From Phaeosaccion multiseriatum (taxonomy: Eukaryota > Protista > Ochrophyta, other classes), in contig OZ218950.1 in NCBI GenBank assembly GCA_965112735.1, positions 1,302,001-1,366,000 on the forward strand: 64,000 nt of DNA, in the 5' to 3' direction. A program made the translations under genes and the position numbers. The notes under the pieces were generated by a model, which was not told the DNA's origin, did no database searches, and saw only the letters and a list, made by a program, of their open reading frames with translations. Positions 23,201 to 42,700 of the stretch are shown here, in pieces (the stretch's first letter is position 1; each line of letters opens with the position of its first letter).

Positions 23201-26200
23201 ACACTCCGGTGCTGCTGTTGCGCAGCGTGGCCATAGAGAAGCCTGCCTCGTGCAGCGCCTCGTAGCCGACCTCGAGCATGATGCGCTGAGTGGGGTCCAT
23301 GGCCTCGGCCTCGGCTACGGAGATGCCAAACGTGGCGTTGTCAAACATCTCCACGCCGTCGATGAAGCCTCCGTGCCACTCCTTCGCCGCACCAGTGAGT
23401 CTGCCCGAGGGCATGGCGGTGATGCAGTCCTTTCCCTCCAGCAGCATGGACCAGAAAGCGTCGGGACTGTCTGCGCCTCCGGGGAAGCGGCACGCCATGC
23501 TCACTATTGCCAGCGGGGCAGAAGCGTCGCCCCCCCCTTCAGCCGATGGCATCCTCCTGGACAGGCGTAGGCTGCTCGCACTTCCCTCCATGAGCGCTGA
23601 GCCCAACCACTCCGCCAAGGCCGCCACGGTGGGGTGGGCGAAGAGGGCGGCACTACTAACGGGAATGTCCGTGAGCAGGTGCAGACGCTGCCTCAGCTCC
23701 ATGAGCGCCAACGAATCCATGCCAGCCTCCATGAGAGGTTTGTCCATGTCGATGCCGACAGAGCCTGCCGTGCTGGAGAGCGCGATATCGGAGATGACGG
23801 ATCGAAGCCTCTCTTGGCGTTCAGCTGGACTGACACCGCGGAGCTTTACTGCCAAGGAGTTTTTTCCGGCCGCCGATGTCGGTGGGGCGGGCAGCAGCTT
23901 GAAGACCTTTCTGCTCGTGAGCGGGGAGGCTCTGACGTTGGTCTTCTCTGCGTGTGAGATGGCCGTCCCCTCCAGGATGACGTGGGCATTGACACCGCCA
24001 AACCCAAAGGAGTTGACAGCTGCAAAAGGAGCAGAAGTAACCACAGCGAGCAGAAGTGCATGGTGAGAACGGGTTCAGCCATTATCCATCATACGATAGC
24101 TCATACCCTCTAAAGTCCTCCTTAACTTGTCTCAAGAAGACGCAAGTGAGTGAGTGGGAGTGGGTGAGTGAGTGATTGGGTGGGTGGGTGGGTGAGTGAG
24201 TGAGTGAGTGAATGAGTGAGTGAGTGAGTGCGGGAGTGAGTGAGTGAGTGAGTAAGTGAGTGAGTGAGTGAGTGAGTGAGTGAGTGAGTGAGTGAGTGAG
24301 TGAGTGAGTGAGTGAGTGAGTGAGTGAGTGAGTGGGTGAGTGGGTGAGTGAGTGAGTGAGTGAGTGAGTGAGTGAGTGAGTGAGTGAGTGAGTGAGTGAG
24401 TGAGTGAGTGAGTGAGTGAGTGAGTGAGAGAGTGGCTGAGTGACTGAGTGAGTGATCACAGGAAACGTTTTTGAATAAGGGCCCCAACGCACCTCCGATT
24501 CGGGTGGAGATGGGGGTCATGCGTCCGGGGATGGGCAGCAGAGCGCTGTTGCCCTCCGTCTTCAGTGCAGGGCTCAGCGTGGACAGGTTGAGGTTGGGAG
24601 GCGCTTGGACATGCCTGAGCACCAGCACCGTCTTGATGAGCCCCGCAATGCCTGCCGCAGCCTCCGCGTGACCAAGGTTGGTCTTGATCGCTCCAACGAC
24701 GAGACGGCGGGCTGTTGCCAGGTCGTGGTCTCCGTAGGTGCCGGCGATGGAAGCCCACTCCGTGCGGTCCCCGAGGGGCGTGCCCGTGCCGTGCGCCTCG
24801 ATGAAGCTCACGTCGGACAGAGCGATGCCCGCCTCTGCTACGGAGTCCAAGACCGCGGCCTTCTGTGCCGCTTCGTTGGGAGCGGTGAGGGTCGTGCCGT
24901 GGCCGGTGTGATTGATGCAGGAGCCTCGAATCACCGCCAATATGTTGTCTTGGGCCTCTATGGCGTCTTCGTGGCGCTTTAGCACGACAGCGCCGCAGCC
25001 CTCTGCTCGCAGCCGCAGCCAGGGCACAAACAGCAAATGGAGGTGACTGGAGGGTGAGCTAGGGGGTGGTCGAGCCGTGCTCATCAGGTTTATAGAACAA
25101 GGACAATCTCAGACCCAAAGAAACACTCTCCGCTCATCCTGCACTTCTCTCCTTCCCTTTCCTCCCCCCTTCCTCTCCTTCCTCTCCCTTTCCCTTTCTC
25201 CTTATCTGTGCCCCTGCCCCTCTCCGTATCTCCGTCCCGCCCTCTCCCTCTCTGTCCCGCTACCTCTCTCGCTCTCCCGATCTTTCTCTCCATCTCCCCT
25301 TCTCTCCCCCCCTATCTCATTTCCTCTCCCTCTCCCTCTCCCGCTCCTGCTCCCTCTTCCCCTCTCTCCCTCTCCCCGCCTCTCCCTCTCCCTCTCTCCG
25401 CCCTCCTTGCGGAGCTGGAAAGGGCGGGCCGTCATCATAATTAGAAGCACTGCGGTAAGCTCCTCCCTTTCTCGTCCTTTTAGTCTTCTCTACAGTCTCG
25501 CAGGCGCCGCTTGTGCTCACCTGCCCGCACGTAGCCGTTGGCAGCGGCATCAAAGACCATGCACTTGTCTGACAGCAAGTGCAGCGATGACATGGCGGAG
25601 AAGGGCTCGGGGTTGGTCATGATGGACACTCCTCCCGCCAGGGCCATGTCGCAGTCGCGGCTTTGGAGGCCTCGGCAGGCCTGGTGCACTGCCACGAGAG
25701 AGGAGGAAGAGGCCGTGTTGATGGTCTGCGAGGGTCCAGTCAGACCGAGGGCGAAGGAGACCCGATTGGCCACGAGAGCCTCTGAAGCGCCCGTAGCAAC
25801 GTACGGTCCAGGAGCGTGAGACTGCATTTTGGACATCCAGTCTCCGTTGCCGCACCCGATGAACACTCCTGGACGTTCGAGAAGAGGACTTTGTGGTGAG
25901 GTATACGGTGTGGTCAGTCACCATGCATCAGAGCATCAGAGCAGTTTCTCCCGCTTCGTCTGATTGTTAGAAGTGGCCTAGTTGGGGTCCCTTGGGGACC
26001 CAATCAGTAGTGTAACGGCCGGAAAACGGGCCAACTAGACGGTAAATCAGTAATAAAAGGAAGGAAGCGCAGCCTGCGTGTGGGCTGGCTTCCGGGTGCT
26101 TGCTTCAGCTCCTGCTCTGCTCTAGCTTGGCTTTGAGGCTAGCTGTCGGTAGTTTCGACAACCCGGAAGACCCGAAAGACACAGGTCTGAGATCCAGCTT

Positions 26201-28191
26201 TGAGGCTGATTTATTGTGTTGGCTTGAGCTTTGCTTCCAGCTGCCCAGCTTTAGGCCGTAGACAGCTTTGGGCTTGCTAGGGTGGCACTGGCTGAGGCGG
26301 GGATGGACTTCCTGCGGTTCCACGCTGCTAGGGTGGCCAGGGCTGAGGAGGGGGACTTCCTGAGTCTTTCATCGGCGGAGGGCGCTACGAGTGACGCTGA
26401 GGGCGGTGGAGCTGATGGTGGTGCTGCGGACGTGGGGTCTGTGGTATCGGAAGCTGCTGCTCCTCCTGCGGAGGTCACTGCCAGCCCTGGGGCTGTGGAC
26501 CGTGTGCGGGCGGCGTTGCGTCGGGGGGAGGAGTCCCTGGAGTCGCCCTCTTTTTTTGAGGGGTCTGCGATTACGGCTGCTGCCGCTTCCCCTCCTGCTG
26601 CTGGGGTGAGGCCGCTGACGGTGGCGGCGTCGGAGGTTTCCTTCCACTCGGGGGATGCAGAGTCGGTGGGCCAGGAGGACTCGGGGGATGCAGAGTCGGT
26701 GGGCCAGGAGGAGAGCACGGTGTGGGATGTGGTTGGCACGCCCTTGGTCCCTCTTGTTGGTGCGTCTGGCGGGGCTCGGGTGGTGGATCAGCCAGCGGAG
26801 GGAGAGAAGACACCGGAGCAGGAGGACACGCGGGTTCTCCAGGAGGGGCTTGAGATGCTGACGCAGCACCAAGCTGCGCAGCTCATGGCGGCCCAACTGC
26901 GGGAGAGCAAGGCGGAGACGGCGGCCCTCCAGCGGGAACTGGAGGTGCTGCGGCTCTCGCGGGGGGCGGAGCAGCAGCGGAAGTTTGCGGTGGAGCTGCA
27001 GCAGCAGGTGGCGGCGGAGCTGCAGCGACAGATGGCGGCGCAGCCGCCGCCGAAGCGGCCGCCTGAGGGTGCTGCCCAGTTGGAGGTGGAGACGTTGCAG
27101 CGGGAGCTGTTAGCGGCGCAGCTCCAGCAGGTTAAGGATGCCGCACCGGGGGGGGTAGAGGTGCTGCAGCAGCAGGTTAAGGATATGCTACAGCGGGACA
27201 TGGAACGGGAGCGGGAGCGGGCACGGCAGCAGGCCCTGGATGTGCTGCAGGCGCCCGCCCGTCATACGGTGCAGACGATCACGCTGCCCGTGGGTGCTAT
27301 CCGTGTGCTCCAGGAGCAGAAACTTCCCTCTCTATTCGATGCGGCTGGACAGCCTCATCCTCGTGCTGTGGTGCTCGCACGCATGTACAACTGGGTGAGC
27401 ATTCTGCAAGGACAGGAGATCTTGACTTCTACTGGGTCCGTGCTTCCGGGCCAAGGGCGGGTGATGGAGCAGCGAGTGCTGGCCGACTTGGGTGCAGTGG
27501 ATCGGGCCACTGTCCTGGCGGAGGCTCAGAAGGGTGCGTCGTGGATGGAGGGCGACCAGCACGTCACATTGGAGTGGGAGACGGAGAGTGCACAGTTCCA
27601 ATTGCTCGCGAGGTGTCTGTTGCGTCTCTTCGGCGTTCCTGTTGCGCGAGACGGCCTCCAGCAGCTTGTCCAGACGTTGGTGCGGGAGGCCAAGCCTCTG
27701 GAAGCGTCCACCGTTTCCTGCCGAGGTGAACCAGGCGCTCGCCAGGGCTGCTCACCAAGCTGGCGGAACTCTCTCTGTGTCTGGCGCAGGTGACGGGGCA
27801 GGCCACGGATGAGCAAGCCTTGGTTACGGGCCTGCTGGCGGTGCTGCGGCCAGAGGTCGAGATTCGGCTTCGTCACGGCTCGTTGCCATTAACTGACGGC
27901 ATGACCAACTTCTGGCTGCGCTGGGAGTCGGCGACTCCCTCGTGGAGTGATTTCTACGCCGCCTTCCAGAAGGCATTTCCTTCCGCGACTCGGGTGCTCC
28001 AGGCTGGTAGCCCACTTACGCTCTCTTCTACTGGTGGGGCTACGCGGGCCCGTGGTGGTGGTGGTGGTGGTCTGCGCACTCCGCGCGGGGGAGTGGCCGT
28101 GAATGCGGTGGAGCAGCATCTGGAAGTGGCCGTGAATTCGGTGGAGCAGCATCTGGACCATCAGCCGTCACAGGAGGTGGGGGTGAATGCA

Positions 28192-28226
<35 letters not shown>

Positions 28227-29168
28227 GGCGCAGCAGCCGCGGCTCACGCCCACCCAGCAGCGGCCCTTGCTGTTCCACGGCTCGGTGAAGCAGCGTGGCA
28301 ACGGCAATGCCCCATTTAACTGCATGACTTGTCGCCGCGCCGGCCATGGATGGATAGAATGCAACGCCATCCCCGCTACGCGTGAGGAGCTGCTCGGCAT
28401 TGTGAGTCGCGTGCAGCGGCGGCAGGCGGTCAGAGCGCAGCACCAGGAGTCCGACATGTCTGAAGCCGTAGCAGCAATGGTGGCGGGCACTCTGGCGGCG
28501 CAGGACGGGTTCAAGTTCGAAGGCTGACGGTGCCCCGGGGCTGCTTGGCCAGCAGCCCTGGGGACCACGACCGCCGCGCGTGAGGATAGCGTCGGCGTGG
28601 GGGAACAGGGGGGGAGGGCGGGCAAGAGCAGTGTAGAAGATAATGAATGTACTTCGCACCTATCTTGTTTGTCAGACCCACCTTTGCCCCATGCCGACGC
28701 TCAGCGTAGGAGCGGTCAGGCTAGTCGTGTAGAGCAGGAGTCACCTGCCATCAGAGTTTATCGGAGTGACATGTGGTGTGGCGACAGACTCAAACGTGCT
28801 CGGCTACAACGGCAACAGCAACAGCAGCAGCAGCTGCAGCAGCAGCAGCAGCAGCAGCAGCGCCGTGTCGTAGAGGCAGTCGTGGAGGGTGCGCACAGAG
28901 AGGCTGTGCCTGCGCCGTCCGCGGTCGAGCAGCTGCCAGCGTCGGAGCGGCAGCTGCCGCAGCCGCAGCGCCAGCAGCCGGGTCCTGTGGTACGCTCTGT
29001 GGTCGAGCAGTCGCGGGGCACTGACGGCCCGGATGCAGTCGTTGCTGGTGAGCACACGACGATGACGGCGGTACAGCAGCAGGCGCAGCGTGCAGTAGAG
29101 GTAGTCGTGGAGGGCGCGCACCAGGAGGCTGCGCCAGCGGCTTCCGCAGTCGAGCAGCTGCCGCCGCC

Positions 29169-29201
<33 letters not shown>

Positions 29202-32200
29202 GTGTCCAGTGGTACGCTCCGTGTGCTTAGTCGAAGCACCGCAGCCCGGCTCTGCCGTCGAGCCGTCGAGCGGACCTGACGTCGCGCTGCCGCTGCCTCT
29301 GCGCCAGGAGGATGCAGTCGTTGCGGGTGAGTGTCCGGAGCAGCAGGTGCCACCGTCGGCAGTGGGGGAGGTTGAGTGCGAGGCGGCAACCGTTGCGCAA
29401 CACGAGTCTGTCTGGATGGATGCAAGGGGTTTGGAGCGGGTGCGTGCGTGTGCCTTCCCGGAACAGCGCGCACTGCGTGCGGCGAAGGAGCGGCAACAGC
29501 GGCTGGGACAGCAGCAGCAGCTGCTGCAGCAGCAGCCGCAGGTGGCGGGGGGGCAGCAGGAGCAATTGGAGCAGCAGCAGGGTCATGCTGTCGAGGCTGC
29601 CGTCCAGGTTGCAAAAGCCAGCCCACCGTCAAGCGATGAGCTTCAGCCTCAGCAGCTGTGCTCCCTGGTGACGCCTCGCCAGGCCAAGGCCATGGGCCTC
29701 GTGCGGGCCTTACCGCTCGGGGCAGCATCTCTTCCGCCATTCACTCCCACGGGGGAACATGAACAGTGGGCGTGGCAGGTTCAGCTTCAGCAGCAGGAGG
29801 AGGTTCAGCTTCAGCAGCAGGAGCAGAGCCTTCGGACCCTGCCGCTGACGTCTCCAGCGGTGCCTCCGGCGGAGGGGCGGAGCAGGACTGAGCAGAGGGT
29901 GGCAGCAAAGTGGTTGAGACGGCGTGCCCAGCAGGCGAAGGCAGCGCTGCGCAAGGGTGACGAGCAGGCGGCACAGGAGCAGCAGGATGCAGCGAGGCGC
30001 GCAGTAGCTCTTCGACGGCGGGTACGGAGGAAGCAGCGGAGGCAGCGTGCTCGTGCGACAGCAGCAGCACAGCAGCATCAGCAGGAGGCTGCTTTCACGG
30101 CGGTGTTGACGGAGGAGGCGGGGCTGCACACGCTTGCCCTTGATCCGTTTGTGCGTGCTTGTCATGCAGTAGCCTTGGAGCCTGGCGCGGGAGTCGCTCT
30201 GCTCAAGGAGCCCCCCAGTCCGGGAGCTTGTGCCTGTGCGTCGGCTGTTGACAGTGAGTGTGATATGTGTGAGGGGTGTGTGCAACGCGCTGCCTTGGCT
30301 CTCTACCGTGTGCGGATGGAGGACGCTCCGGGGGGGGTGGCCGCCTTGCAGACAGCAGTGCGGAGAGCTGAGATTGCCGAAGCGGTGGCTGCCACGGGTC
30401 GTACGGCAGTCCCAGCAGGGCGGGGCCACACGATCGAGGTTACGGTGCGCTCGCCAGTGAAGGTCAGTGACGCTCGGCATTGCTTGGCTGCTACCGCTCC
30501 ACGGGATGCCAGTGCCGCCGACGCCGTGGAGAAGAGCGCCTTTACAGCCTTGATGGACAGTGGGTGCACAGGAGCGGGCTGCATCTCGACAGCCTGCTTC
30601 AATCAACTGGTGGCGGATGGCACGGTGGAGCGGTCAGAGCTCGCCACGCAGAAGGGGGTGCAGGTGTCTTACGCTGACAATCGTGCCAAGACCATGTCCA
30701 GAGGGCTTGTTTGGCTTCAGGTGGGACTCACGCCGACGTGCCAGCCGGTGCTACCCTTTCATGTGGTGGACCACTTGGCGCGGCCCATCTTCTTGGGGCA
30801 GGATTTCTTCACCCAAGTAGGGGCAGTCGTCGATCATCGTGCGAAGCAGCTCTACGTACTTCCGACTCCTTCGGAGGAGGCCACGTCGGATGCTCGTCCG
30901 TCCGATGCCTTGGCTGTGCAAGTGCTGGCAGTGGTGGACGGCAACGCTGCTGTTGGGGGGGTACGTGCGGTGGAGGCTTTGAGCTTGGGACCTGGACAGA
31001 CGGGGTCCCTTCTCCTCGAGCTTACGGGTATCGTTGAGGGTGTCCAGGCGGTGGTGGAGCTGGGCGCTCACGGACACTTGGCGGCAGAGGCGGACGTTCT
31101 ATGGTGGCTGGAGCACGAGCAGGTTCTAGTGGCGCACAAAGATGGTGTGTATGCTGGGGGGCAGAGTTACCGAATCACAGTGCAGAATCACCACAATCAG
31201 GTCATTGTGGTCGTTCCTGGGCAGGTCATCGGCACCGCTTCTTGCTTGCTCGACTCGGAGGCGAGCGCTGAGGTGGCCGCGCTCATGCTCGCTGAGCCGG
31301 CTTCTTCAGATACCATGCCGGAGACTGCAGCGGCCCCTTCCTCCTGGCTTGGTGCTCTTGGCGGGATGGTGAGGCGTGTGGTGAAGCGCAGGCTGCCATG
31401 GTCCAAGGCGCGGGAGGCGGTTGAGTCTGTGGTGGAGGAGGAGGCGTCGCAGCAGCCGGCTGAAGCTGAAGCAGGAGCTGAGCCGGTCTGGTGCCCACCG
31501 CAGGGGCCTGTAGTTCGCTGCTCGGTGGTACCAGAGGAGGCTGAGCTGGGGGCTACGGCGCTTCCGCTGCAAGCTGTGCAGGTGCAGGCCCTGACGCACC
31601 CACGGACTGAGGTGGGGGTGCCATCGACTCTGGTGCCTCAGCCGGCAGTGAAGGCCCGGTTTCAGCATTTGCAGCGCAGCGGCAAGAAGGGGAGTCAGTG
31701 TCGTCAGAGTCGAGTGGGTGCTGGGCGGTTGCAGCGGCAACGTCGGAGAGTGGCATCAATGCTTGTGGAGTCTCCTGTGCTGTGGGACCAGGTTCATCGG
31801 CAAGCAGTGTTGGAGCGCCATGAGCAAGTGCGACGACAAGTTTTGCCGCTGCGACGGGAGCTGTGCGCTGACGGCTCCTGCGCCTGGCATCACCGAGGGC
31901 TTCGTCTCGCTTGGGGGAGCGACTTGGGGCAACGACAGGTGCCGCGGGAGCGTCGCGTGCCCTTGGCGCCCTCCTGGGGGGGATAGTGCGAGTGCCGGCC
32001 AGACGAGCTGACACACCACGAGTGGACTCGAAGGAGGAGACAGCAGCATGGTTGGCAACGCAGCAGGCCAAGCGGTTACAAGCGGCACAGCAGCAGGCAC
32101 GGCAGCAACGCCAGTGGGCATTGCAGCGACGGCACAAGGCCCAGCGGGAAGAGCTCTTTAAGCGAGCGGATTCGTCGGCAGCTCAGCAGGTTCAGCGGTC

Positions 32201-35200
32201 CAATGCGGTACAGCAGCAGGTGGCTCCGGCGGCGGTAGCGCGACGCCGTCAGACACAGTTGCAGGAGCCCCGACCGCCTCGTACAGGCCAGCTGCAGGTC
32301 CACCACGTGGCGGGGGCTGATGATTCCACCAGCAGGCCTGCGCCAGGGGCGGCATCGTCAGTGGCGTCGGAGGAACCGCCACTACGGTCCGAGGCAGGTT
32401 CATCGTCGGCGGCGGTGGGCACATCATTGACTGACCTACGCGGTGATGGGTGGGTACTGGATGCGGATGGTGCCTTGCGACTCGGTAGCCAGAGTGACAC
32501 GTCCGGTGGGACTCTGATGGCAGGAGTGCAGTTGATCAAGGAGTGGTACCCTCACCTGTCAGAGCGAGTGTATGGACGTCTGCGCGAGTGCTTGGTTGCG
32601 GCAGAGGAAGGGGCTGTGACCGCGCTACTGCTCCTGCGCCCCCATGTACACCAAGCCGCTGGCACGGGTCTGAGCGGCGTTGGGGACGTTGCTGTGGCCG
32701 CATGGGCCCAACAGCTCTTGTCGTTGTGGTCTAGTCGCCCATTACAGCAGCAGGAGAAGGTGGAGCAGGATATGACCAATGCGCTGCTGCTCCTTATCCA
32801 ATTGCGAACGGTGCTGCAGGAGAGTCGCTGTCTTGGTGGTGGAGTGGAGTCGTGGGATGCAGGAGAGCTTGTGGTGGAGCAGCGGCGCCGTGCCAAGCTC
32901 ACTACGGAGCGGGCTCAGTTCTGGCTCAGGGAGCTACCGTCGCCCCTGCACGCTATCACGATTGGCGACGGTGCCTGGACGGAGGTGCAACGCTGGGGAC
33001 TGGTGGCGATCCTTCGCGCTCGGTCGCAAGCATTCTGTCAGAGGCCTGGTGACTACGGTCGGACGGATACTCTCTTCTTTGAGTGGGGACTGAAGGATGC
33101 GAATCAGCAGCCCATTCGGAGCTCCGCTCGACGGTATCCTCCACATTTGCGGCGGGGGATTGAGATTGAGATTGACAAGCTTCTCGCGGCTGCCATCATT
33201 CGCCCCAGCACTTCCAGCTGGGCTACTCCGCTGATGGCGGTCTTGAAGACGGACGCAGCTGGCAAAACCAAGTGTCATGAGGATGGGACGCCTGTGGTAC
33301 GTATGACGTGTGACTTGTCTCAGCTGAATGATGCGTGTCGCACGGAGGCCCCTGCGATGCCGGTGATTGATGATCTGCTGGCAGAGATGCATGGCTCCAA
33401 GGTGTTCTCGGTGATGGACATCATGTCGGGCTACTTCAATGTGCCGATGGCATCAGCAGCGGAAGAGGACATATCCACCTTTGTGTGCCACAGTGGAACT
33501 TACGCTTGGCGAGTGATGCCGCAGGGCGCGAAGAATGCGCCTGCAGTCTTTGTGCGGCTTATGAACAAGGTGCTCAAGGGGCTTCAGGAGCATGTGGCAT
33601 GCTTTGTGGACGATATTGCTGTGTTTTCGGCTACGGTTGAGCAGCATCTGGAGCATTTGGATGCTGTGCTTGCGCGGTTGGTGGAGCACAAGCTCAAGTT
33701 GGAGCCGAGTAAGGCTGTATTGGGTGCACCGGAGGTGCGGTTCTGCGGGCATTTGCTGGATCAGAATGGGGTGCGCACAGACCCGGCCAAGCATGCGGCG
33801 GTGCAAGAGCTGGTCAAGCCGTTGAGGTTGCTTGCGAAGGATGGCGGCGTCAATCGAGTTAAGCAGGTGCGGCGTTTCATTGGCATGCTCAGCTACTTTC
33901 GCCGTTTCATTCCGGAGTTTGCGCGCAAAGTGCGGCCCCTCAATGGGCTGCTGCGTAAGGGCGTCGACGTGAGCACCGCCTGGAATGCCTCGCACGATGC
34001 AGCTTGGGATGGACTCGTTGCCGACTTGTTGTCTTCCCCTGCACTGGCTTTTCCGGAGTACGGGCCAGCGACGACTTTCACCCTGAGTACCGATGCCTCG
34101 ACGGAAGGGTTAGCAGGAGTGCTCTCTCAGAAAGATGCGACCGGGGAGGAGCGTGTGGTGACGTTCATCAGTCGGGCTACCACGGAGACGGAGGCGCGAC
34201 TGAGCAGCACGGAGCTGGAGCTGCTGGCAGTGGTGTGGTGTGTGCGCAAACTGGCCATGTACATCTGCCACTACCCCACCACAGTGGTGACGGACCATCA
34301 GCCCTTGTTGTGGTTGGCTGGGCACAAGGATACCAATTCCAAGCTGTTCAGATGGTACGAGCGGCTCTCTACGCACCACTTGCAGTTTGTGCATCGTCCC
34401 GGGAAGCAAATGGTGGTGCCTGACTGCCTCTCTCGCAACGCGCTTCCGGTGCAGGAGTGGGAGACGCATGCGGGGGTAGACTTGGCCATGGTTGCGTGCG
34501 AGTGGCCGTCGCCCTTGCACACCTGGTGTGCTTCGATGGGGGTGCAGTTGAACCTGGTGGAGATGGTAGGGGACGAGTGCAGCCTTCATTGGGAGGAGCC
34601 CACGGAGGGCGCACTGCTTCGCTTTCTCGCAGTGGCGCAACAGCTGCAGGGCGAAGCCGACACACGCCTTCCTATTCCTGTGCCTGCCGTGACGGCCCAG
34701 CAACAGCAGCAACGGTGCCACCACCAGCAGCAGAGCGGAGCGGAGGCCCTACAAGCCTGGCAGACTGCAGAGGTGGACTTGGCGGCGACGCAGTCACGCA
34801 GGGGTACTGCTCGGCGTGCTTGGACACAGCGTCTTCAGCAATGTGGATGGCAGCCTACGCGAGCACCTCAGCTGGGTGTGAAGAAGGCTGTGATAGAGGC
34901 CTGGCAGCCGGGTCAGATGCCGCCATTTGTGAGTCACATTTCCGCAGCGAGGTGCACGTACGTGTCTACGCCGAGGCACGTGCAGGCTCTATCGACTCAG
35001 TTGCGCTCAGCCAAAGTGGTCGCTATGGATTCGGAGTGGGCGCGTCACCGACGGCGCGCGTCGCTGCTGCAATTGGCCGTGCAGGTTGGGCCGCTGCCGG
35101 ATGTGGCGCGTGACTATGGGCTCTTGATTGATCTAGACGCGCTTCAGAAGGCGGGGGGTATGATGGTACTGGCGCAAGTGTTGCGGGACCTGTGGGCCGA

Positions 35201-38200
35201 ACCCTCGATTGTGAAGCTGGCTCACCACTGGAGTCACGACCAACGTGCCCTGGGCCGATGGCCGGAGCTCGCGGAGCATGTCCAGCACATCGTCAACTTG
35301 GTGGACACCAGTGACCTCTTTAAGCGCGTGTGCCCCGAACATACTCAGTTCATCGGACTCCAGGACCTTGTCAGCATGTTTTTGGAGCAACACCTTAGCA
35401 AGGAGGAGCGGGCCACCGATTGGACGAAGCGGCCGCTGTCCGCCGCTCAACGGGAGTACGCGTTTGCTGACGCTGCGGCGCTCCTCCGCCTCTGGCCTCG
35501 CATGGCGGAGTGTGTGCCGTTCGTCCATGGTGGCCCGGGGGTGGAGCTTAGCGCGATGAGCCCTGCTCACACCCCTGCGGAGCAGGAGGAGATGCAAGTC
35601 GGCAGGTTCATGCAGGCCGCGGTTGGTTATTGGGGCGATCGCGACCACGTGTCACCGCTCTACATCTTTGGTGTCCACTCCAAGACGTTGGAGGTATTCG
35701 ACCTGGCCAAACTGCAATTCAAACTGCAGTGCTCGTGGGAGACAATGATGCAGATGGTGGAGCGGTTCACGCGGACATATAAGCGCCAGCGGAAGGTGGT
35801 GGGCGCGTTGGCCAGTCATCTAGATACCATGATCGAGTTGCCATGGAAGCAAGTCCGTCAGGTGTCGCGTGACTACTTCTCGATGTGCACACCAGCGGAG
35901 GCTCAGCAAACGGGTGCCGCGGCCGCTCATGCGTGGGCTGCATGGGAGGCCGAGCTTGAGGAGGATGCGTCTCGTCTGCCCTCGGAGGTGTGTCCAGCTG
36001 CTGTTGCTGGTGCCACCGAGGGTGAGGAGCTTGTTACGGAGGAGGGCCGCATCACCCACCCTGGGGAGCCGCCTGCTGCGGAGTCGCCGTCGGAGCCTGG
36101 TACGGCAGATCTACTGGTCACGGAAGAAGCGGGGGATGCAGGTGATGAAGCTGCGGATGCAGTGGATAATGAAGCTGAGGAGGCAGTGGATTCAGTTTCC
36201 AAGGAGCCGGTGGAGCAGGAGTCCACCTTGCAGCGCGAGCTTGATGGGCATCGACGAGAGGCAGAGCGACAGTTTGGGTGGTCTCTACCAGGCACGGTGC
36301 CTGCTGCCGCGGCGCACAGACGAGCGGCTGGAGCTTTGGGTGGCAGTCTGCATGTCGAGGCCGCGTGGTGGGTGCGTGCGCAGCGGGCTGATGCGGAGCT
36401 GGAAGCACTCCGTCGCCGTGTTCAGGCTGGGCCCACCGGCGGCGTGGTGGATGCAGGTGGGGGTGAGTTCTTTGTGGATGAGGACGGGCTCTTGATGCGT
36501 AAGTGGGCTCCTGGGGGCTTTCGGTGGCGGGTGCGGCACACTCGGCTACAAGTATGTGTGCCCAAGGAGATGCGGCCAGCCTTGCTGCATGCCGCCCACA
36601 CCGATGCCATCGCAGGTGGGCACCAAGGCCCGGGACGTATGCTAGACGCGCTGCAAGAGCGCGTATGGTGGGAGAAGATGAATGCACATGCGCTGTATTG
36701 GGCCCGCTCCTGTCTGGCGTGCCAGACACGCAAGACTCCTCGCCGGCAGCCAAAGCCTGTGCCGCTGTCGTCCATTTCCAAGGTGGATGGACCTTGGGCG
36801 GTCATGGGCGCTGATGTGGCTGGCCCCTTTCCTATGGGCATGGGCGGTGAGGAGTACCTCTTGGTGTTTCAGGATTGGTTCACGAAGTGGACAGTGGTGG
36901 TGCCTTTGAGGGCACAGGACTATACGGCGGAAGGTATTGCTCGGGCCTTCGTGCGGCATGTCGTCACCACCCTGGGTGTGCCCCGAGTGCTGGTGAGTGA
37001 TCAAGGCTCGCAGTTCACCAGTGCGCTCATGGGCGATGTGATGCGAGTTCTATCGGCGTCGCAAGTGTTCACGACGCCGATGCACCAACAGGCCAATGGG
37101 CAGGTGGAGCGCTTCATGGCCACGATCAAGGACATGTTGGCGACGACCGTGGAGTCACAGATGCAGCAGTGGCCAGATTACGTCGCCGGGCTCACCTATG
37201 CGTACAACTGCCGCTCGCAGGAGAGCACGGGGATGGCGCCATTCTACGCCTTGTTCGGTCGGCACCCCCCGGTGCCTCTACAGGCGATGCTTCCGGCGCT
37301 AGTGGAGGACGGGTCGTTTTCGTCTGCCTCGGCATGGGTCCACGAACTGCGGGCACGTCTGGCTGCGGCTGCGGCGGTGGTCAATGGGAGGCGCTGCGAC
37401 TACCACGGGAGATTGCAGCTGAAGAACGCCTCACGCCGTTGGCCGACGCCCCTGCGACCCGGAACCAAGGTGATGTTGTATCGTCCTGGTGCCGCCGCCC
37501 AGCAAGAAGGGGAAGAACTCGAAGGGCCCCCGTCAGCGCAACTCAAGGCTCTGCAGCACTCGTGGGATGGTCCTTATACAGTCTTGCCTTGGCCAGCTCT
37601 GGGGGCCTACTGTGCTCAGCATGGGCGGGTGAGTGAAGAGCACTATCAGGTCATGCAGCGCAGCGCAGTGTATCTGTCTATGAAACGGGTGCGCGGCAAT
37701 GGTGTGGAGCAGCTGCAACGGGCGTACCACAGAGACTTGACGAAGCCGTTCATCGATGGGGTGAGCGAGCGGCCCTTCGGTCTCCCGGAAGGGTTCGCCA
37801 GGTATCATATCCGTTGGTGCTCTCCTCAGTGGGCTACCAGCGCAATGCAGGAGCAGCGTAGCTTAGAGCTGGACGAGGTGAGTGAAGGGAAAGTGCCCAC
37901 GCTGGCGAGGATTGTGAAGTTCCGCTGGCGCAAAGCCACGGGGCTGCCACTGCGGCGAGAGTATAACGTGCGGTGGGCGGTGTCGGACGGCGGCACTTTC
38001 CAGACCTGGGAATGGGCTGAGTGGTTACTGGAGCGGGGACACGCCAAGGCCATAGAGGCGTTCGAGAACGCCCTCCCGCACACTGCCCTTGATCCAGGAG
38101 TGAATGTCAAAAGAGGGCATAGGTCTAAACGGGAAAGCACGATCCGTCTGCGGCAACATGAGAAGTGGGGCAGCGGGCTGGCGCACGAGACGCAATTCTA

Positions 38201-39708
38201 TCGCTCGCATCTCGGCTTCTGAGGGAGCTGGCGGAAGAGGCGGGGGTGTAGTGAGGGGGATGTTAGAAGTGGCCTAGTTGGGGTCCCTTGGGGACCCAAT
38301 CAGTAGTGTAACGGCCGGAAAACGGGCCAACTAGACGGTAAATCAGTAATAAAAGGAAGGAAGCGCAGCCTGCGTGTGGGCTGGCTTCCGGGTGCTTGCT
38401 TCAGCTCCTGCTCTGCTCTAGCTTGGCTTTGAGGCTAGCTGTCGGTAGTTTCGACATGATTCTCTCTCTCTGCTTGCTTCAGTCATCACTACTGAAAGGG
38501 GTACATCGACCCACCTGTTTTGCTCTCAAGCAGAGCTTCCTTGTCAAGCCCTGCGTCGCGAAAGGTCTCGTAGGCCACCTCCAACATGACTGAGTGTGTT
38601 GAGGAGAACAGCAAAGCAGGCGAGACCCTTGTTGGTTATACTGAAGACGAAACAAGTCCGAGCGAGTCACCATTGTGACGCTTTGCGTACCTCGCTGCTG
38701 AGGGTCCATTGCGGACGCTTCCGGGTCAGAGATGTTGAAGAAGGCGTTATCGAACAGCTCTACGTCGGGGAGGAAGCCCCCCCGCGTGGGGTAGCCGCTG
38801 TCCAAGGCCGCAGGCTCCCATCTGTGAGAGAGACGTGCGCGAACGCGGGAGGAGTGTTTTGGGAGGCGCCAGGCAGCAAGCAAGGGCAGTGAAGCAGGGA
38901 GGGGGCGTGGTGAAGGAGAGAAAGATAAGTGTGAGAGCAATCAGCTCTCCTCGACCGTGTGTACAGTGATTCTTCAGCCCTCATCCCGTCCACTACCATC
39001 CCAACCACTCCAGCAAGATCTGCTGCGGTGGCAGGAGGGGCGCGGGGCGGGCGGGGGCAAAATGCTAAGCAAGAAGCGCCGTGATGCACGCTGCCCAGCC
39101 ACCATCTCCAAGGTTCCGTCGCCCAGACCCAACCACCGCCCACTCACGCACCTATCTGTGGGCATGTCTGTGATGCCGCTGCCCTCCCTGCAGAGCAGGT
39201 CCCACAGCTCAGGAACGGAGTTGGCACCTCCTGGGAAGCGGCAGGCCATTCCAACAATGGCAATGTCGCCACGACGATGGCCGCCTTTCTGGCTTCTCGT
39301 TGGTCCGCTGCCCATGTTTGGGTGCGTGGGGGAGAGAGGCGCCCTTCCAACCTCCTCCTCTTTGCCCTTGCCATCGTACCAAAAGTCAAAGGGCTTCTTG
39401 TCGCCGAGGTCAGCAACAACCTCCTCGTGAGCCCTCCTCGTTTGAGAGGCCGAGGAGACTCCTTCGTCGATTCCGCCTCGTTGTTCCTCCTTTTCGTCGC
39501 CTGCTGGAGAGTCTCGCTCCCACAAGACTTGCGTCACCCCCCCCATTGGAACGTTACGACGGCCTTCCTCGCCCCTGGAACCTTCATTTCCATTCTTGGC
39601 GTGGCGGGAGAGGAGGAAGGGCTTCTTCTGGTCATCCCCTCTGCCTGCTGTCTCGCCGGACGTCACTCCTCCCAGGGCATCGTCCCCTCCTCGTCCACCA
39701 TGATCCAT
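1616..39708 (-). CDS. Spliced multimodular type I polyketide synthase (3'-partial): KS(S)-ACP-KS-AT-DH-ER-KR-ACP-KS-DH-ER-KR-ACP-KS-AT-KR-ACP-KS-DH-ER-KR-ACP-KS...
   Basis: Exons deduced from GT-AG junctions that restore KS/AT consensus: 39708-39152, 38821-38691, 38589-38515, 25868-25521, 25002-24493, 24019-22897, 22729-21952, 21793-16509, 16346-11301, 11138-6882, 6726-1616 (apparent 1-bp deletion at ~5987). Motifs: KS xTACSSS/EAHGTGT/NIGHLE; AT GHSLGE and HAFH; DH HxxxxxxxxP and HPAVLD; ER HAASGGVG; KR GGLGxLG, LDD, NYAAAN; ACP G(L/M)DS. The start ATG is tentative. Confidence 0.92.
2320..7510 (-). other. PKS extension module 4: KS-DH-ER-KR-ACP (no AT), with apparent frameshift in the KS-DH linker
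   Basis: LQTACSSS, EAHGTGT, NIGHLE; DH KDHAVNNVVIIPG, HPAVLD; ER HAASGGVG; KR LDD, NYAAAN; ACP AGLDSLS. Confidence 0.85.
7580..11930 (-). other. PKS extension module 3: KS-AT(malonyl)-KR-ACP (no DH or ER)
   Basis: LFTGQGSQ, GHSLGE, HAFH; KR GGLGGLG, HAAGVLDD, GQMNYAAAN; ACP AGLDSMAS. Confidence 0.88.
10512..19340. repeat. Near-identical intragenic duplication: ~10512-12130 = ~15720-17340 (offset 5208, includes a 162-bp intron) and ~12410-14130 = ~17625-19340
   Basis: Long stretches are identical by eye. The ORF track gives identical or near-identical translations for paired spurious ORFs (e.g. 10686/15894, 11184/16392, 11703/16911). Confidence 0.93.
12010..17140 (-). other. PKS extension module 2: KS-DH-ER-KR-ACP (no AT)
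   Basis: KS end (FGAGGTNAHVLL) is followed after ~60 aa by DH (QEHAVGGVVLMPG). No GQGSQ/GHSxG/HAFH motifs are present. Confidence 0.88.
17210..23520 (-). other. PKS extension module 1: KS-AT(malonyl)-DH-ER-KR-ACP
   Basis: DTLCSSS; FTGQGSQ, GHSLGE, VSHAFHS; QDHAVGGVVLMPG; HAASGGVG; HAAGVLDD, GQANYAAAN; AGLDSMS. Domain boundaries approximate. Confidence 0.88.
24146..24455. repeat. (GAGT)n microsatellite inside a PKS intron
   Basis: Tandem gagt units, directly visible. Confidence 0.97.
25965..26160 (+). repeat. 5' LTR (196 bp)
   Basis: tgttagaag...tttcgaca; same as 38261-38456. TATA/polyA-like taataaaa at 26051-26058. Confidence 0.97.
26161..26169 (+). promoter_or_regulatory. Putative self-priming primer-binding site
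   Basis: ACCCGGAAG immediately after the LTR is the exact reverse complement of CTTCCGGGT at 26089-26097 in the LTR. No TGG-starting tRNA PBS is present. Confidence 0.72.
26303..28527 (+). CDS. gag: Gag-like protein with C-terminal CCHC zinc knuckle (frame disrupted at ~27710-27750 in this copy or assembly)
   Basis: First ATG at 26303, coiled-coil-like region, then ORF 27790-28527 with CMTCRRAGHGWIEC (C-x2-C-x4-H-x4-C) at 28321-28362. Confidence 0.78.
28525..28566 (+). promoter_or_regulatory. Putative stop-codon readthrough signal (UGA-CGG plus 3' stem-loop)
   Basis: Single in-frame TGA between gag and the protease ORF, followed by CGG and the stem ccccggggctgct/agcagccctgggg (13 bp with one G-U, 5-nt loop). 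Confidence 0.75.
28528..31986 (+). CDS. pol: pol part 1: long Gln-rich spacer plus retroviral-type aspartic protease
   Basis: Open in the gag frame from 28528. ALMDSGCTG (Asp codon 30556-30558) and PIFLGQDFF motifs. Confidence 0.85.
31911..38222 (+). CDS. pol: pol part 2: reverse transcriptase, RNase H, DEDDy 3'-5' exonuclease, integrase, chromodomain
   Basis: RT: IRPSTSSWATP, MPQGAKNAP, FVDD (33603-33614). RH: TDAS, ELELLAVV, TDHQPL. Exo: AMDSEW...HDQ...DWTKRPLSAAQREYAFADA. IN: HHCC zinc finger, DDE core, GPY. Chromo: YNVRW...TWE. Confidence 0.95.
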   Translation: MGERLGATTGAAGASRALGALLGGIVRVPARRADTPRVDSKEETAAWLATQQAKRLQAAQQQARQQRQWALQRRHKAQREELFKRADSSAAQQVQRSNAVQQQVAPAAVARRRQTQLQEPRPPRTGQLQVHHVAGADDSTSRPAPGAASSVASEEPPLRSEAGSSSAAVGTSLTDLRGDGWVLDADGALRLGSQSDTSGGTLMAGVQLIKEWYPHLSERVYGRLRECLVAAEEGAVTALLLLRPHVHQAAGTGLSGVGDVAVAAWAQQLLSLWSSRPLQQQEKVEQDMTNALLLLIQLRTVLQESRCLGGGVESWDAGELVVEQRRRAKLTTERAQFWLRELPSPLHAITIGDGAWTEVQRWGLVAILRARSQAFCQRPGDYGRTDTLFFEWGLKDANQQPIRSSARRYPPHLRRGIEIEIDKLLAAAIIRPSTSSWATPLMAVLKTDAAGKTKCHEDGTPVVRMTCDLSQLNDACRTEAPAMPVIDDLLAEMHGSKVFSVMDIMSGYFNVPMASAAEEDISTFVCHSGTYAWRVMPQGAKNAPAVFVRLMNKVLKGLQEHVACFVDDIAVFSATVEQHLEHLDAVLARLVEHKLKLEPSKAVLGAPEVRFCGHLLDQNGVRTDPAKHAAVQELVKPLRLLAKDGGVNRVKQVRRFIGMLSYFRRFIPEFARKVRPLNGLLRKGVDVSTAWNASHDAAWDGLVADLLSSPALAFPEYGPATTFTLSTDASTEGLAGVLSQKDATGEERVVTFISRATTETEARLSSTELELLAVVWCVRKLAMYICHYPTTVVTDHQPLLWLAGHKDTNSKLFRWYERLSTHHLQFVHRPGKQMVVPDCLSRNALPVQEWETHAGVDLAMVACEWPSPLHTWCASMGVQLNLVEMVGDECSLHWEEPTEGALLRFLAVAQQLQGEADTRLPIPVPAVTAQQQQQRCHHQQQSGAEALQAWQTAEVDLAATQSRRGTARRAWTQRLQQCGWQPTRAPQLGVKKAVIEAWQPGQMPPFVSHISAARCTYVSTPRHVQALSTQLRSAKVVAMDSEWARHRRRASLLQLAVQVGPLPDVARDYGLLIDLDALQKAGGMMVLAQVLRDLWAEPSIVKLAHHWSHDQRALGRWPELAEHVQHIVNLVDTSDLFKRVCPEHTQFIGLQDLVSMFLEQHLSKEERATDWTKRPLSAAQREYAFADAAALLRLWPRMAECVPFVHGGPGVELSAMSPAHTPAEQEEMQVGRFMQAAVGYWGDRDHVSPLYIFGVHSKTLEVFDLAKLQFKLQCSWETMMQMVERFTRTYKRQRKVVGALASHLDTMIELPWKQVRQVSRDYFSMCTPAEAQQTGAAAAHAWAAWEAELEEDASRLPSEVCPAAVAGATEGEELVTEEGRITHPGEPPAAESPSEPGTADLLVTEEAGDAGDEAADAVDNEAEEAVDSVSKEPVEQESTLQRELDGHRREAERQFGWSLPGTVPAAAAHRRAAGALGGSLHVEAAWWVRAQRADAELEALRRRVQAGPTGGVVDAGGGEFFVDEDGLLMRKWAPGGFRWRVRHTRLQVCVPKEMRPALLHAAHTDAIAGGHQGPGRMLDALQERVWWEKMNAHALYWARSCLACQTRKTPRRQPKPVPLSSISKVDGPWAVMGADVAGPFPMGMGGEEYLLVFQDWFTKWTVVVPLRAQDYTAEGIARAFVRHVVTTLGVPRVLVSDQGSQFTSALMGDVMRVLSASQVFTTPMHQQANGQVERFMATIKDMLATTVESQMQQWPDYVAGLTYAYNCRSQESTGMAPFYALFGRHPPVPLQAMLPALVEDGSFSSASAWVHELRARLAAAAAVVNGRRCDYHGRLQLKNASRRWPTPLRPGTKVMLYRPGAAAQQEGEELEGPPSAQLKALQHSWDGPYTVLPWPALGAYCAQHGRVSEEHYQVMQRSAVYLSMKRVRGNGVEQLQRAYHRDLTKPFIDGVSERPFGLPEGFARYHIRWCSPQWATSAMQEQRSLELDEVSEGKVPTLARIVKFRWRKATGLPLRREYNVRWAVSDGGTFQTWEWAEWLLERGHAKAIEAFENALPHTALDPGVNVKRGHRSKRESTIRLRQHEKWGSGLAHETQFYRSHLGF
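38261..38456 (+). repeat. 3' LTR (196 bp)
   Basis: Identical by eye to the 5' LTR; preceded by the PPT and followed by TSD TGAT. Confidence 0.97.
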
Positions 39709-42700
39709 CCTCACTTTTCGTTCCCTTCAGCACCACTAGAGGGCAAGAAACACGGGGAGAGTTGAGTGCGGATTTCTACCCAAAAAAAAAGAAAAAATCT
39801 TGAAATTTCACCGCATCAAGAAGGCGGCCGGCCCGGAAGGCGAGGAACTTTAAAAAGGGGTAGATGATACTCTACTCCCAAAATGATGAGAAAGTCACTA
39901 AGACAATGGTATATCGATGCAGGAGGAGGAGGGAACAGGCGTACCGGTGGACGAAGGAGAGGCCAAACAATCAGACGAAGGAGATACAGGGCAAGAGGAG
40001 AACGACGACGTGGCACTAGTCTCGGGTGCCAAGTCTCGAGCGGGCAGAGCGCTGAAGCGCCCAAGGATCAATTGGACATAAACCCCCCCTGCCACGCTAC
40101 GTGCCTAGCTACGTGCTCTACGAAGCGTGCGCACGAGTCGGCCCTGGACATGATTATCTGATTATTGATTGTGGCCGGCGCCAGCCAGCCTGATTATTGA
40201 TTATGGCCGGCGCCAGCGGACCTGATAATTGTTTTGGGGCTCACTTTTTTCCCCTTCAGCTTTGGATCATTCAGCTCTGCAGAGAAGATGGTAAGTCGGA
40301 CGTTGCCGTACAGCACATTCTCGAACTCGAGGGACTTGAACACCTTGAAAGAGTCATCCAGCTGAACATCGGCAAAGCACACGGCAATGGAGGGCGGGGA
40401 AGAGTGGAAAATGGGGTGAGGGCATGCAAGAGTGAAGGCCTCAGGAAAGGGACACACCAGCAGGCAGCATCCTCTGACTCTGGCTACGAGAATGATGAGC
40501 CCTCCTTGTTCCTCACCTGCAGCATGCGCCCCCAGATCATCTGTAGCCTGTAGAGCAGCTGCCGCTCCTTTCCGCGCACACACTTTAGAAGTAAAAAACC
40601 TGCACAATGCTCCAAAGCCTGGGACATAGATGCCCAGACTATCAGCAGTTATCGACTGTTGCTGCGGTTGCTGCGGTTGCTGCTACTGCTGCTACTGCTG
40701 CTGCTGCTGCTCCTGCTGCTGTGCTGCTGCCCCGTACTGCTGCTGCTCCTGCTGCTGTTGCTGCTGCCGACGCCTGCTGCTGCTGCCCCCCGCTGGTGCT
40801 GCCCCTGCCCCGTGCTGCTGCTGCGGCGTACCCAACCATCGAGTGTGCTCGACGCTGCCCCGCTTCCCTGCGACACGCCCTTGCTTTTGTTTCTGCTTCG
40901 GCCCCTTAGCCTCACCACGCCGCTTGAGTCGACCCCCTGTAGGCCCTAGAACTGTAGCTGGCTGTTTTTGGCTCAGGGAATGCGACTTCATTTCCTTCAT
41001 CATTTTCTCCGCGTCACCGATGCTGCCAGTTGATGCACCGTTCCGCACGAGAAGCAGGGCCGCTGAGGTTACAAGGGCCGTATTGCCTGGTCCTACCTCA
41101 ACGGGCAGCTCTGCAGTCACCCACTGGAAGCACACGTTCTCCTTGTACACTGTGGTCACGCGCGGGTCGTAGGAGTAGAAGGAGCTCGAGTACTCGTTTA
41201 CGGCTTTCTTCTGAGCGGCAAGATGGACGGGGATGGGGACAAGGAAGGAGGGCGAAGTGAGGAAGGAGAAGGGAAGAAAAGAGGCGAGGCGTGTTCATCC
41301 AGAACCCTAGAGAGTAGCGCAAATGAGACACAACCGAAGCACACGAACCTGCTCTTGTGATGTTTCCTTCTTTCTCTCCGCCTCGTTGTACTCCGCTTTC
41401 ATCCGTTTCTTCTCGTCCAATCGCTCTGTACACCGATGCCTTGCCCCCACCATAAAAAAGTCGTCCTCGAGGCTGTGGTATACACAGCCCGCTGCGGTGA
41501 CGTCCACCCATAAGCTTGCACACACTCTGACGATGCATGCGCAAAGAGGCCCCAGACAAACACGTCACGTTGGGCGTGCCCTCCCACTTCAGACTGGCGG
41601 CTTGGCGTCGAGGCCCTGTAGTAGGGAGTTTGCCAAGTAGGCAACCCTTCCTTTGGAACCTTTGCCGCCTCGAGTGCTACTTTGATGAACCATCTGCGCC
41701 GGTGGTCTATTGTTCCTCCAAAACCCTCCCCCACCACCACCCCCCCCCTCCTCGCCCGTGTTTCCATCCTCCTCGTCCTCATCCTCGTCCCTTCACCCCT
41801 GTCAGCACCAAAAAGACGTCCCATGGGAGCGAGAACAACAGGGAGAAGAAGTGTGATCAGGTAAGTACAGAAAGGGCGGCCCGAGAGTGGGCGGGATGGG
41901 GGTGGGGGGGGTGCGGGGGGTGGGCAAGAGCAGGCATCAAGAAGGAAGAGACGATACTCGAGAACGTACCGCTTAGACGTGCGACCAAGGGGCAGCGAGT
42001 AAAACCCTACGAAGTGGTCACCACTTGCACCATCTACCCTGTCTGCGCTCGAAGACATGTCACCACCCCCTTCTTTCTCTCCTCCATCTCCTTCTTTCGC
42101 TTCTCTTCCTGCTCCGCTGGGAGCAGCAAACCCTCATCAATTCCTTTCATTGCTGCACCAATCAACCGCAGCTTCTCAATTTCTTCCTGCGTGTGCCGGC
42201 CTCGTCCTCCTCAATCCTTGTAACCAGCTTCTATACCCGCCTTCTGGTTGCTCAAGTCCTGCTTAGCTGCCTGCAATTGTTTCCACTTCTCCTCCTGTGC
42301 CCTGGCGATCGTCACAAGCTCAGTCTCCAATGCTTCTTGAGTGCCAGGTTTCGAAGCGGCTGCTGGTTGTACCGCCGCAGCGGCTTCATCTGCCAGAGCA
42401 TATCCGTTGGCTCAAATCATGTCATCGGGCTCCTGCGGCCTTTCCACTAATTCTCTCAGAGCCCTGCGCGCCAGAAATATCTTCAGGACTGTCACACAGG
42501 TGATGCTGTTCCATCCTTATGTACTGCCCCGCCACAGCTTCTTCATCCTTCTCCATTTTTTGAGATGCGCCTCTGATGGCCAGATAGATGGTCAGCAATC
42601 AAAATCAAGAAATCAAGACACAGGAGGTTTCCGCGCCAAGAGGGCTCATCAAGATACTCAAATCCTCCCCCGTTCCTGTCTCCCGTTCTCCTCCCTCTGC

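Follow-up and report, generated by a model that had tools for sequence, protein, structure and literature searches.

The present study describes a retrotransposon from the ochrophyte alga Phaeosaccion multiseriatum whose Pol almost certainly joins protease (PR), reverse transcriptase (RT), RNase H (RH), a DEDDy 3′-5′ exonuclease (Exo), and integrase (IN), in that order, in one polyprotein. The element lies in a 64,000-nt stretch of genomic DNA (GenBank assembly GCA_965112735.1, contig OZ218950.1, positions 1,302,001 to 1,366,000 of the forward strand), hereafter called the window; window coordinates are used below unless a contig is named. Along the 2103-aa pol frame, the Pfam order was RVT_1 (residues 468 to 614), RT_RNaseH (720 to 820), DNA_pol_A_exo1 (1017 to 1199), Integrase_H2C2 (1550 to 1609), and rve (1634 to 1720). 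Exo was the sole extra domain recognized within the PR-RT-RH-IN order, in which the protease was assigned by motif. Previously, the original prediction, made from the letters of the DNA alone, had placed an exonuclease in frame between the RNase H and the integrase of a Ty3/gypsy-type element and had assigned it to the DEDDy class of RNase D, WRN, mut-7, and Rrp6. The Pfam domain order confirms the position, and the class is borne out by a Pfam E of 1e-22 together with a complete catalytic motif set.

The exonuclease segment (34950 to 35510) translates in frame 1 into 187 residues without a stop and lies wholly within the single open frame from 31911 to 38222. DNA_pol_A_exo1 (PF01612), the profile that had been suggested for checking the domain, matched the full pol open reading frame (ORF) at 74.9 bits, well over the curated cutoff of 23.6. 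The excised 187-aa piece scored 81.2 bits and covered profile positions 2 to 168 of 173. Retranslation reproduced the motifs and catalytic coordinates quoted earlier, namely VVAMDSEW, KLAHHWSHDQRAL, and EYAFADA, with the ExoI Asp at 35028 to 35030 and Glu at 35034 to 35036, the ExoII Asp at 35238 to 35240, and the ExoIII Tyr at 35457 to 35459 and Asp at 35469 to 35471 (D27, E29, D97, Y170, and D174 of the piece). These five residues are invariant or nearly so in a 30-sequence alignment, and the domain is apparently a working nuclease. Exo folds as a module of its own, and the low-complexity linkers on either side of it are poorly conserved.

The sibling copies keep the domain. The 187-aa Exo sequence, searched against the 67-Mb genome in six frames, gave 43 matches, comprising about 20 at 89 to 100% identity (family 1), about 10 at 56 to 61% (family 2), and some fragments. 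Family 1 is young and recently active, with roughly 20 copies. A full family 2 element has identical 200-nt long terminal repeats (LTRs), ACGC flanks, and a 3199-aa frame; its Pfam order is the same as that of family 1, its Exo scores 54.7 bits, and the Pols of the two families align over RT, RH, Exo, and IN. The elements measure 12.5 to 13.3 kb, with a Pol of ~3250 aa. Every ungapped family 1 copy (18/18) has the intact D-E-D-Y-D set and no stop codon. The nine family 2 copies all retain the ExoI and ExoIII motifs, and two of them deviate from the WSHD string around the ExoII Asp.

Between the families, dN/dS, which is only a rough measure here because synonymous sites are saturated (dS above 1.2), was 0.05 for RNase H, 0.07 for RT, 0.12 for integrase, and 0.22 for Exo. 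Corresponding values for the stretches adjoining Exo were 0.30 (acidic linker), 0.36 (RH-Exo linker), and 0.48 (post-Exo region). Within family 1, where each distinct change was counted once with the window copy as the reference, Exo showed 34 synonymous and 28 nonsynonymous changes (ω ~0.26, binomial p 2e-7), and the downstream acidic linker showed 33 and 66, respectively (ω ~0.70). Counted first on the 561-nt block alone, ω was 0.25 in family 1 and 0.11 in family 2. The constraint on Exo is weaker than that on RT, RNase H, and integrase, and stronger than that on the adjoining stretches. Therefore, the ratios within and between the families indicate that Exo was constrained at the amino acid level in lineages that kept transposing. 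The check that had been proposed on copies and dN/dS thus came out in favor of a retained domain, with ω of 0.2 to 0.26 over about 20 copies and a second family.

Both Exo-bearing families cluster in 0.4 Mb of contig 14 (C14:2.32-2.74 Mb) and near contig ends (C5:8-30 kb and C11:11 kb), and one family 2 copy is nested within a family 1 copy (C5:19-35 kb). This clustering suggests targeted or tolerated insertion in repeat-rich regions.

By sequence, Exo is distant from proteins of known structure; a search of the PDB reached NrnC-like chains and chains of Rrp6 or RNase D, with E of 1e-5 at best. Pol residues 1000 to 1330 were modeled with AlphaFold on the 30-sequence alignment; pLDDT exceeded 90 over the Exo part (residues 1 to 205) and was low afterward. 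On this model, Exo is predicted to have the RNase H-like exonuclease fold. Foldseek matched it to the Nibbler EXO domain, Rrp6, RNase D, and the WRN exonuclease with E of about 1e-10. VIA-align Z scores were 22.8 and 22.6 for Nibbler, 21.3 for the WRN exonuclease, and 21.0 for RNase D; about 20 for A-family polymerase exonuclease domains, with Klenow, Aquifex Pol I, and the apicoplast polymerase in the range of 17 to 21; and about 18 to 19 for EXD1 and Egalitarian. Thus, Exo shares fold (Z 21 to 23, rmsd 2.1 to 2.7 Å over 175 to 195 residues) and catalytic motifs with Nibbler/mut-7 (EXD3), the WRN exonuclease, and RNase D (PDB 7jw2, 7jw6, 2e6l, and 1yt3). In contrast to these proteins, it is embedded in a retroelement polyprotein without a Mut7-C, HRDC, or helicase partner, and is 21 to 25% identical to them.

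An all-protein HMMER search over 1.84 billion representatives returned only one protein below 1e-30, the 186-aa product of a 917-nt JGI metagenome contig. This product is 47% identical to Exo, and its frame is open up to the upstream contig edge. Matches 2 and 3, the two best cellular ones, carry Mut7-C; among the 99 best cellular matches, Mut7-C occurs in 8, HRDC in 7, and tRNA_bind in 6, and most carry nothing else. A quick maximum-likelihood tree covering 133 domains groups the metagenome contig with families 1 and 2 (SH-aLRT 99); the Mut7-C proteins make up a different clade, with equal support, that does not include them. The rows nearest to the element clade are short eukaryotic Exo-only proteins, e.g., from Gefionella and Lagenidium. 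Pfam found no Mut7-C module in pol, and membership in the mut-7/EXD3/Nibbler family is ruled out by this absence together with the place in the tree. The HRDC that follows the exonuclease in the RNase D/Rrp6/WRN family was likewise not found; the 330 aa following Exo, where the model has low confidence, gave no Pfam match at E up to 1. Given the lack of a Mut7-C or HRDC partner and the tree position, we class the domain as a DEDDy/PF01612 exonuclease rather than among the mut-7 relatives. A recent capture by the element from its host is also excluded: of the roughly eight cellular PF01612 loci in the host genome, those examined share with the element domain only a short similarity at the ExoIII motif. 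The ExoII region of the element domain is histidine-rich (HHW-x-HD), invariant across both families and the metagenome relative, and atypical among PF01612 proteins. Such an ExoII might change metal or substrate handling.

The element is delimited by two direct repeats of 196 nt, 100% identical and 12,296 nt apart, which end in TG...CA and have TGAT on both flanks (Table 1). From the LTR positions and these flanks, it measures 12,492 bp (25965 to 38456) with a 4-bp target duplication, in agreement with the 12.5 kb given earlier. Its LTRs and domain order are those of a Ty3/gypsy-type LTR retrotransposon. All 120 listed RT-RH relatives have the Ty3/gypsy-type Pfam set, but at identities of no more than 38% (RVT_1, RT_RNaseH_2, and Integrase_H2C2).

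Table 1. Features of the Exo-bearing retrotransposon and of the sibling copy at the window edge (window coordinates).
Feature	Position	Strand	Basis
Sibling-copy tail: integrase C-terminus and 3′ LTR; pol open over 3274 aa	1..1604	+	ORFs, repeat comparison
Target-site duplication TGAT, 5′ side; partner TGAT at 38457-38460	25961..25964	+	Flank comparison
5′ LTR, 196 nt; AATAAAA (TATA-like) box at 26051-26057	25965..26160	+	Repeat comparison
LTR-internal CTTCCGGGT, candidate transcript 5′ end and candidate self-primer	26089..26097	+	Complementarity
Primer-binding-site position ACCCGGAAG, reverse complement of 26089-26097	26161..26169	+	Complementarity
gag-position region, no Pfam match; TGA end at 28525-28527, then pol in same frame	26255..28527	+	ORFs, Pfam
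N-terminal pol part; aspartic-protease motif LMDSGCTG at 30550-30573	28528..31983	+	Motif
G-run where protease and RT frames separate in window copy	31969..31975	+	ORF frames, run contigs
Reverse transcriptase, RVT_1, pol aa 468-614; FVDD at 33603	33312..33752	+	Pfam
RNase H, RT_RNaseH_2/RT_RNaseH, pol aa 691-820	33981..34370	+	Pfam
RH-Exo linker, partly Q-rich, 48% identity between families	34371..34949	+	Alignment
DEDDy 3′-5′ exonuclease domain (PF01612)	34950..35510	+	Pfam, motifs, model fold
Post-Exo region, 38% identity between families	35511..35900	+	Alignment
Acidic low-complexity linker, 27% identity between families, within-family ω ~0.7	35901..36500	+	Alignment
Integrase: H2C2 zinc domain 36558-36737, rve catalytic core 36810-37070	36558..37070	+	Pfam
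C-terminal pol part, 67% identity between families	37071..38222	+	Alignment
Purine-rich tract AGTGAGGGGGA abutting 3′ LTR, candidate polypurine tract	38250..38260	+	Sequence
3′ LTR	38261..38456	+	Repeat comparison

Several parts of Pol gave no Pfam match at E up to 1, namely the 368-aa stretch around the protease motif (30097 to 31200), the RH-Exo linker, and the C-terminus, where a by-eye chromodomain likeness of the end is unconfirmed. For the protease part, the family 2 homologue gives a weak match to gag-asp_proteas. The post-Exo region has no Pfam match either, with only sub-threshold scores in the ESM Atlas and low model confidence. This stretch of ~130 aa directly follows the exonuclease and is conserved between the families. 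Possibly, it acts as a partner domain for Exo. The candidate polypurine tract likewise ends in GGGGA in family 2.

The window copy as assembled is not fully open, with one frame change in gag (near 27730 to 27790) and another between protease and RT. The latter coincides with the G-run, where the contigs of four public runs all differ by one base in length. An assembly error at the homopolymer and a true lesion in the window copy are both possible reasons for the break, as the run contigs collapse copies. Family 1 siblings have an uninterrupted protease-to-integrase frame of 3274 or 3303 aa, and family 2 frames are open over the same range (3199 and 3128 aa). One such sibling reaches into the start of the window, with its Exo 1.3 kb before it. 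In the window copy, a single TGA ends the gag-position region and pol goes on in the same frame; an intact sibling has the same layout, with a 619-aa ORF, a stop, and a 3274-aa ORF, all in one frame. This arrangement would fit stop-codon readthrough.

In either family, the LTR and the primer-binding site (PBS) share a 9-nt complementarity. The family 2 pair consists of AAACGGGTT inside the LTR (L023:620-628) and AACCCGTTT at the LTR/PBS junction (L023:688-696), again complementary; its sequence differs from that of the family 1 pair, in a compensatory manner. Each family has a TATA-like box some 30 to 37 nt upstream of this LTR segment. The compensatory pairing lends indirect support to Tf1-type self-priming and to the self-primer idea of the original prediction. 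Tf1/sushi-type Ty3/gypsy elements are alike in the PBS-position complementarity to an LTR-internal segment and in the PR-RT-RH-IN order. They differ in that the RT of the algal element reaches no more than 38% identity with the database proteins found, and self-priming elements of this type are not known to have an exonuclease.

No second Pol of this kind emerged from the databases searched. An RT or integrase domain was found in none of the 99 next-best Exo matches listed, and PF01612 in none of the 120 listed RT-RH relatives, whose extra domains were PHD, chromo, methylase, and macro. No homologues of the Exo region were returned among proteins of 1157 to 3680 aa. In the ESM Atlas, the feature search with RH plus Exo gave no usable match, and the fold search gave no cluster with RT plus PF01612. 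No relative was found among IMG/VR viral contigs, and a scan of metagenome contigs returned only bacterial RNase D-like and Pol A-type exonucleases. This absence of other RT-RH-Exo-IN proteins is suggestive and not a proof, because databases under-represent eukaryotic transposon proteins and Repbase, Dfam, and GyDB were outside the search. In the literature, an RT-RH-Exo-IN Pol was described in no paper found. The accessory domains named there for LTR-retrotransposon Pols are few (chromodomain, extra RNase H, and dUTPase), and a transposable-element survey of Ectocarpus and an oomycete paper leave an exonuclease unmentioned.

Among the closest published precedents are elements of bdelloid rotifers. 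In bdelloid Juno and Vesta LTR retrotransposons and Athena elements, a DEDDy exonuclease forms a separate ORF3 with the motif changed to DEED (Rodriguez et al. 2017, PMC5408684); the original prediction had described these nucleases correctly as separate ORFs. According to the authors of that report, DEDDy exonucleases had been unreported in retrotransposons before it, and they propose 3′-end processing of RNA or single-stranded DNA for the retroelement DEDDy ORFs (PMC5408684, PMC6431247). In a review, the accessory domains given for LTR-element polyproteins include a DnaQ-like exonuclease, with the bdelloid work cited for it (PMC6338049). Juno, Vesta, Athena, and Terminon resemble the algal element in bearing an RNase D-like DEDDy on reverse-transcribing elements, including Ty3/gypsy-like ones (Rodriguez et al. 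2017, PMC5408684; Arkhipova and Yushenova 2019, PMC6431247). Compared by description only, they differ in having a separate ORF downstream of pol with a DEED motif, whereas the algal domain keeps all of DEDD-Y and is built in frame into Pol, after RNase H and before integrase. A bdelloid-type accessory gene, i.e., a separate ORF3 downstream of pol, was rejected for the alga, as the domain lies inside pol and upstream of integrase.

Dada DNA transposons of Ectocarpus siliculosus and Laccaria bicolor have an in-frame DEDDy inside the DDE transposase, for which processing of exposed 3′ ends was suggested (Kojima and Jurka 2013, PMC3706591). Dada is alike in joining an in-frame DEDDy to a DDE-type integrating enzyme in a mobile-element protein; in contrast, it is a cut-and-paste DNA transposon with the exonuclease inside the transposase catalytic domain, whereas the algal Exo is a separate module ~350 aa upstream of integrase. 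As analogies only, nidovirus nsp14 ExoN (PMC7968707) is a DEDD-superfamily exonuclease recruited by a replicating system, and the CRISPR Cas2-DEDDh trimmer-integrase (PMC10284694) has a DEDD exonuclease in an integrating system; both differ in being DEDDh, the former from an RNA virus and the latter from a prokaryotic adaptation module. Novelty is consequently narrower than had been implied: the in-frame pol layout was found in no paper or database protein, but an in-frame DEDDy in a DDE transposase is already published for Dada. Recruitment of DEDDy nucleases by mobile elements is the known kind, and the in-frame Pol domain between RNase H and integrase is what is new here. The algal Pol, Dada, and the bdelloid ORF3s together suggest that DEDDy nucleases were recruited several times by mobile elements.

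What does the exonuclease do for the element? We tentatively favor, at somewhat below an even chance, a role in which Exo would be made and packaged with RT and integrase and would trim the 3′ ends of the element's own replication intermediates. Single-stranded 3′ tails would be nibbled back to the duplex. One candidate substrate would be the fold-back RNA self-primer, apparently used in place of a tRNA; another would be the 3′ ends of the finished cDNA, where trimming could leave clean CA ends for integrase. Exo and the post-Exo region look like a self-contained module that the protease might release or leave tethered. In Pol, Exo follows the enzyme that produces 3′ ends (RNase H) and precedes the one that acts on them (integrase). 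Nibbler, the WRN exonuclease, and RNase D are 3′-end trimmers and not bulk degraders. Trimming is favored because of the trimmer-like fold, the position between RNase H and integrase, the self-priming context, and the Dada and bdelloid analogies.

Several considerations weigh against this role. It has no biochemical or RNA evidence behind it. Self-priming elements such as Tf1 manage with RNase H alone, and retroviral-type integrases perform their own 3′ processing; thus, where the RNase H of Tf1 and an integrase suffice, an extra trimmer is not obviously needed. The protease cut sites leave it undecided whether Exo is partnered with RT-RH, with IN, or with neither, and about 350 residues, including an acidic disordered stretch, separate Exo from the integrase zinc domain. 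[quoted passage not shown]

A noncatalytic or other role is somewhat unlikely. Exo could be an RNA/DNA-binding or scaffold domain like EXD1 and Maelstrom, could degrade the RNA template or aberrant cDNA, or could be a near-neutral ancestral passenger. EXD1 and Egalitarian are indeed among the fold matches, and inactive DEDD derivatives that only bind RNA exist (cited in PMC5408684). However, pure binding should not need the five catalytic residues, which are kept across two families with saturated synonymous sites, and the ω of Exo argues against a neutral passenger.

Proofreading is possible but quite unlikely. Exo would remove misincorporated 3′ nucleotides from the cDNA and return the primer end to RT, raising the fidelity of a long element. 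PF01612 is the family to which the proofreading domain of A-family DNA polymerases belongs, such polymerases are among the structural matches (Z 17 to 21, as above), Exo is translated in the same polyprotein as RT, and the elements are unusually long. Much of this length, however, is low-complexity sequence, and there are LTR elements considerably longer than 12.5 kb that lack an exonuclease. In A-family polymerases, the exonuclease is packed directly against the polymerase, whereas Exo lies C-terminal to RNase H, past a poorly conserved, partly Q-rich linker of ~150 aa. Besides, the best structural matches are stand-alone trimmers and not polymerase-attached domains. To our knowledge, no proofreading reverse transcriptase exists, and a reverse-transcribing system in which Exo edits the nascent cDNA 3′ end, with built-in proofreading or mismatch excision, is not known from retroviruses or retrotransposons and appears improbable.

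A counter-defense role, in which Exo would degrade or trim restricting host nucleic acids such as small silencing RNAs and thereby protect the element RNA or cDNA, has a similarly low probability. Nibbler, the top structural match, is the fly mut-7 homologue and trims small RNAs, the two best cellular sequence matches carry Mut7-C, and immune evasion is among the roles of arenavirus and nidovirus exonucleases; but a Pol-embedded enzyme is scarce and mostly enclosed in particles, and WRN and RNase D score within 2 Z units of Nibbler. The mut-7 argument for counter-silencing made in the original prediction is weak, as Exo lacks a Mut7-C module and groups apart from the Mut7-C clade, in a clade of its own (SH-aLRT 99).

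The surroundings of the element belong to a giant modular type I polyketide synthase (PKS) on the minus strand (1612 to 25084 and 38482 to 39714), with at least five KS-AT/DH-ER-KR-ACP modules in ORFs of 1400 to 1850 aa. KS N-terminal pieces lie beyond the element at 38482 to 39714, and the matching KS C-terminal domain lies at 24125 to 25084. The LTR end of the sibling copy is 8 nt from an ORF that stops within a KS domain. Both retrotransposon copies therefore appear to lie inside the PKS gene, antisense and possibly in introns. A tandem array of about 45 units with an 8-nt period (24110 to 24500) lies in the PKS region just downstream, in plus-strand coordinates, of the KS C-terminal ORF.

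Among polymerases, reverse transcriptases are the standard example of enzymes that lack an editing nuclease. In the algal element, a complete DEDDy exonuclease is co-translated with RT, RNase H, and integrase, and selection kept it through the divergence of two families. The element offers a natural setting in which to ask what an exonuclease contributes to an element that replicates by reverse transcription, and, since their LTRs are identical, the copies are young enough for cloning and testing. Whichever role applies, be it primer or cDNA trimming, proofreading, or interference with host RNAs, it would be a new way for a retroelement to handle nucleic-acid ends.

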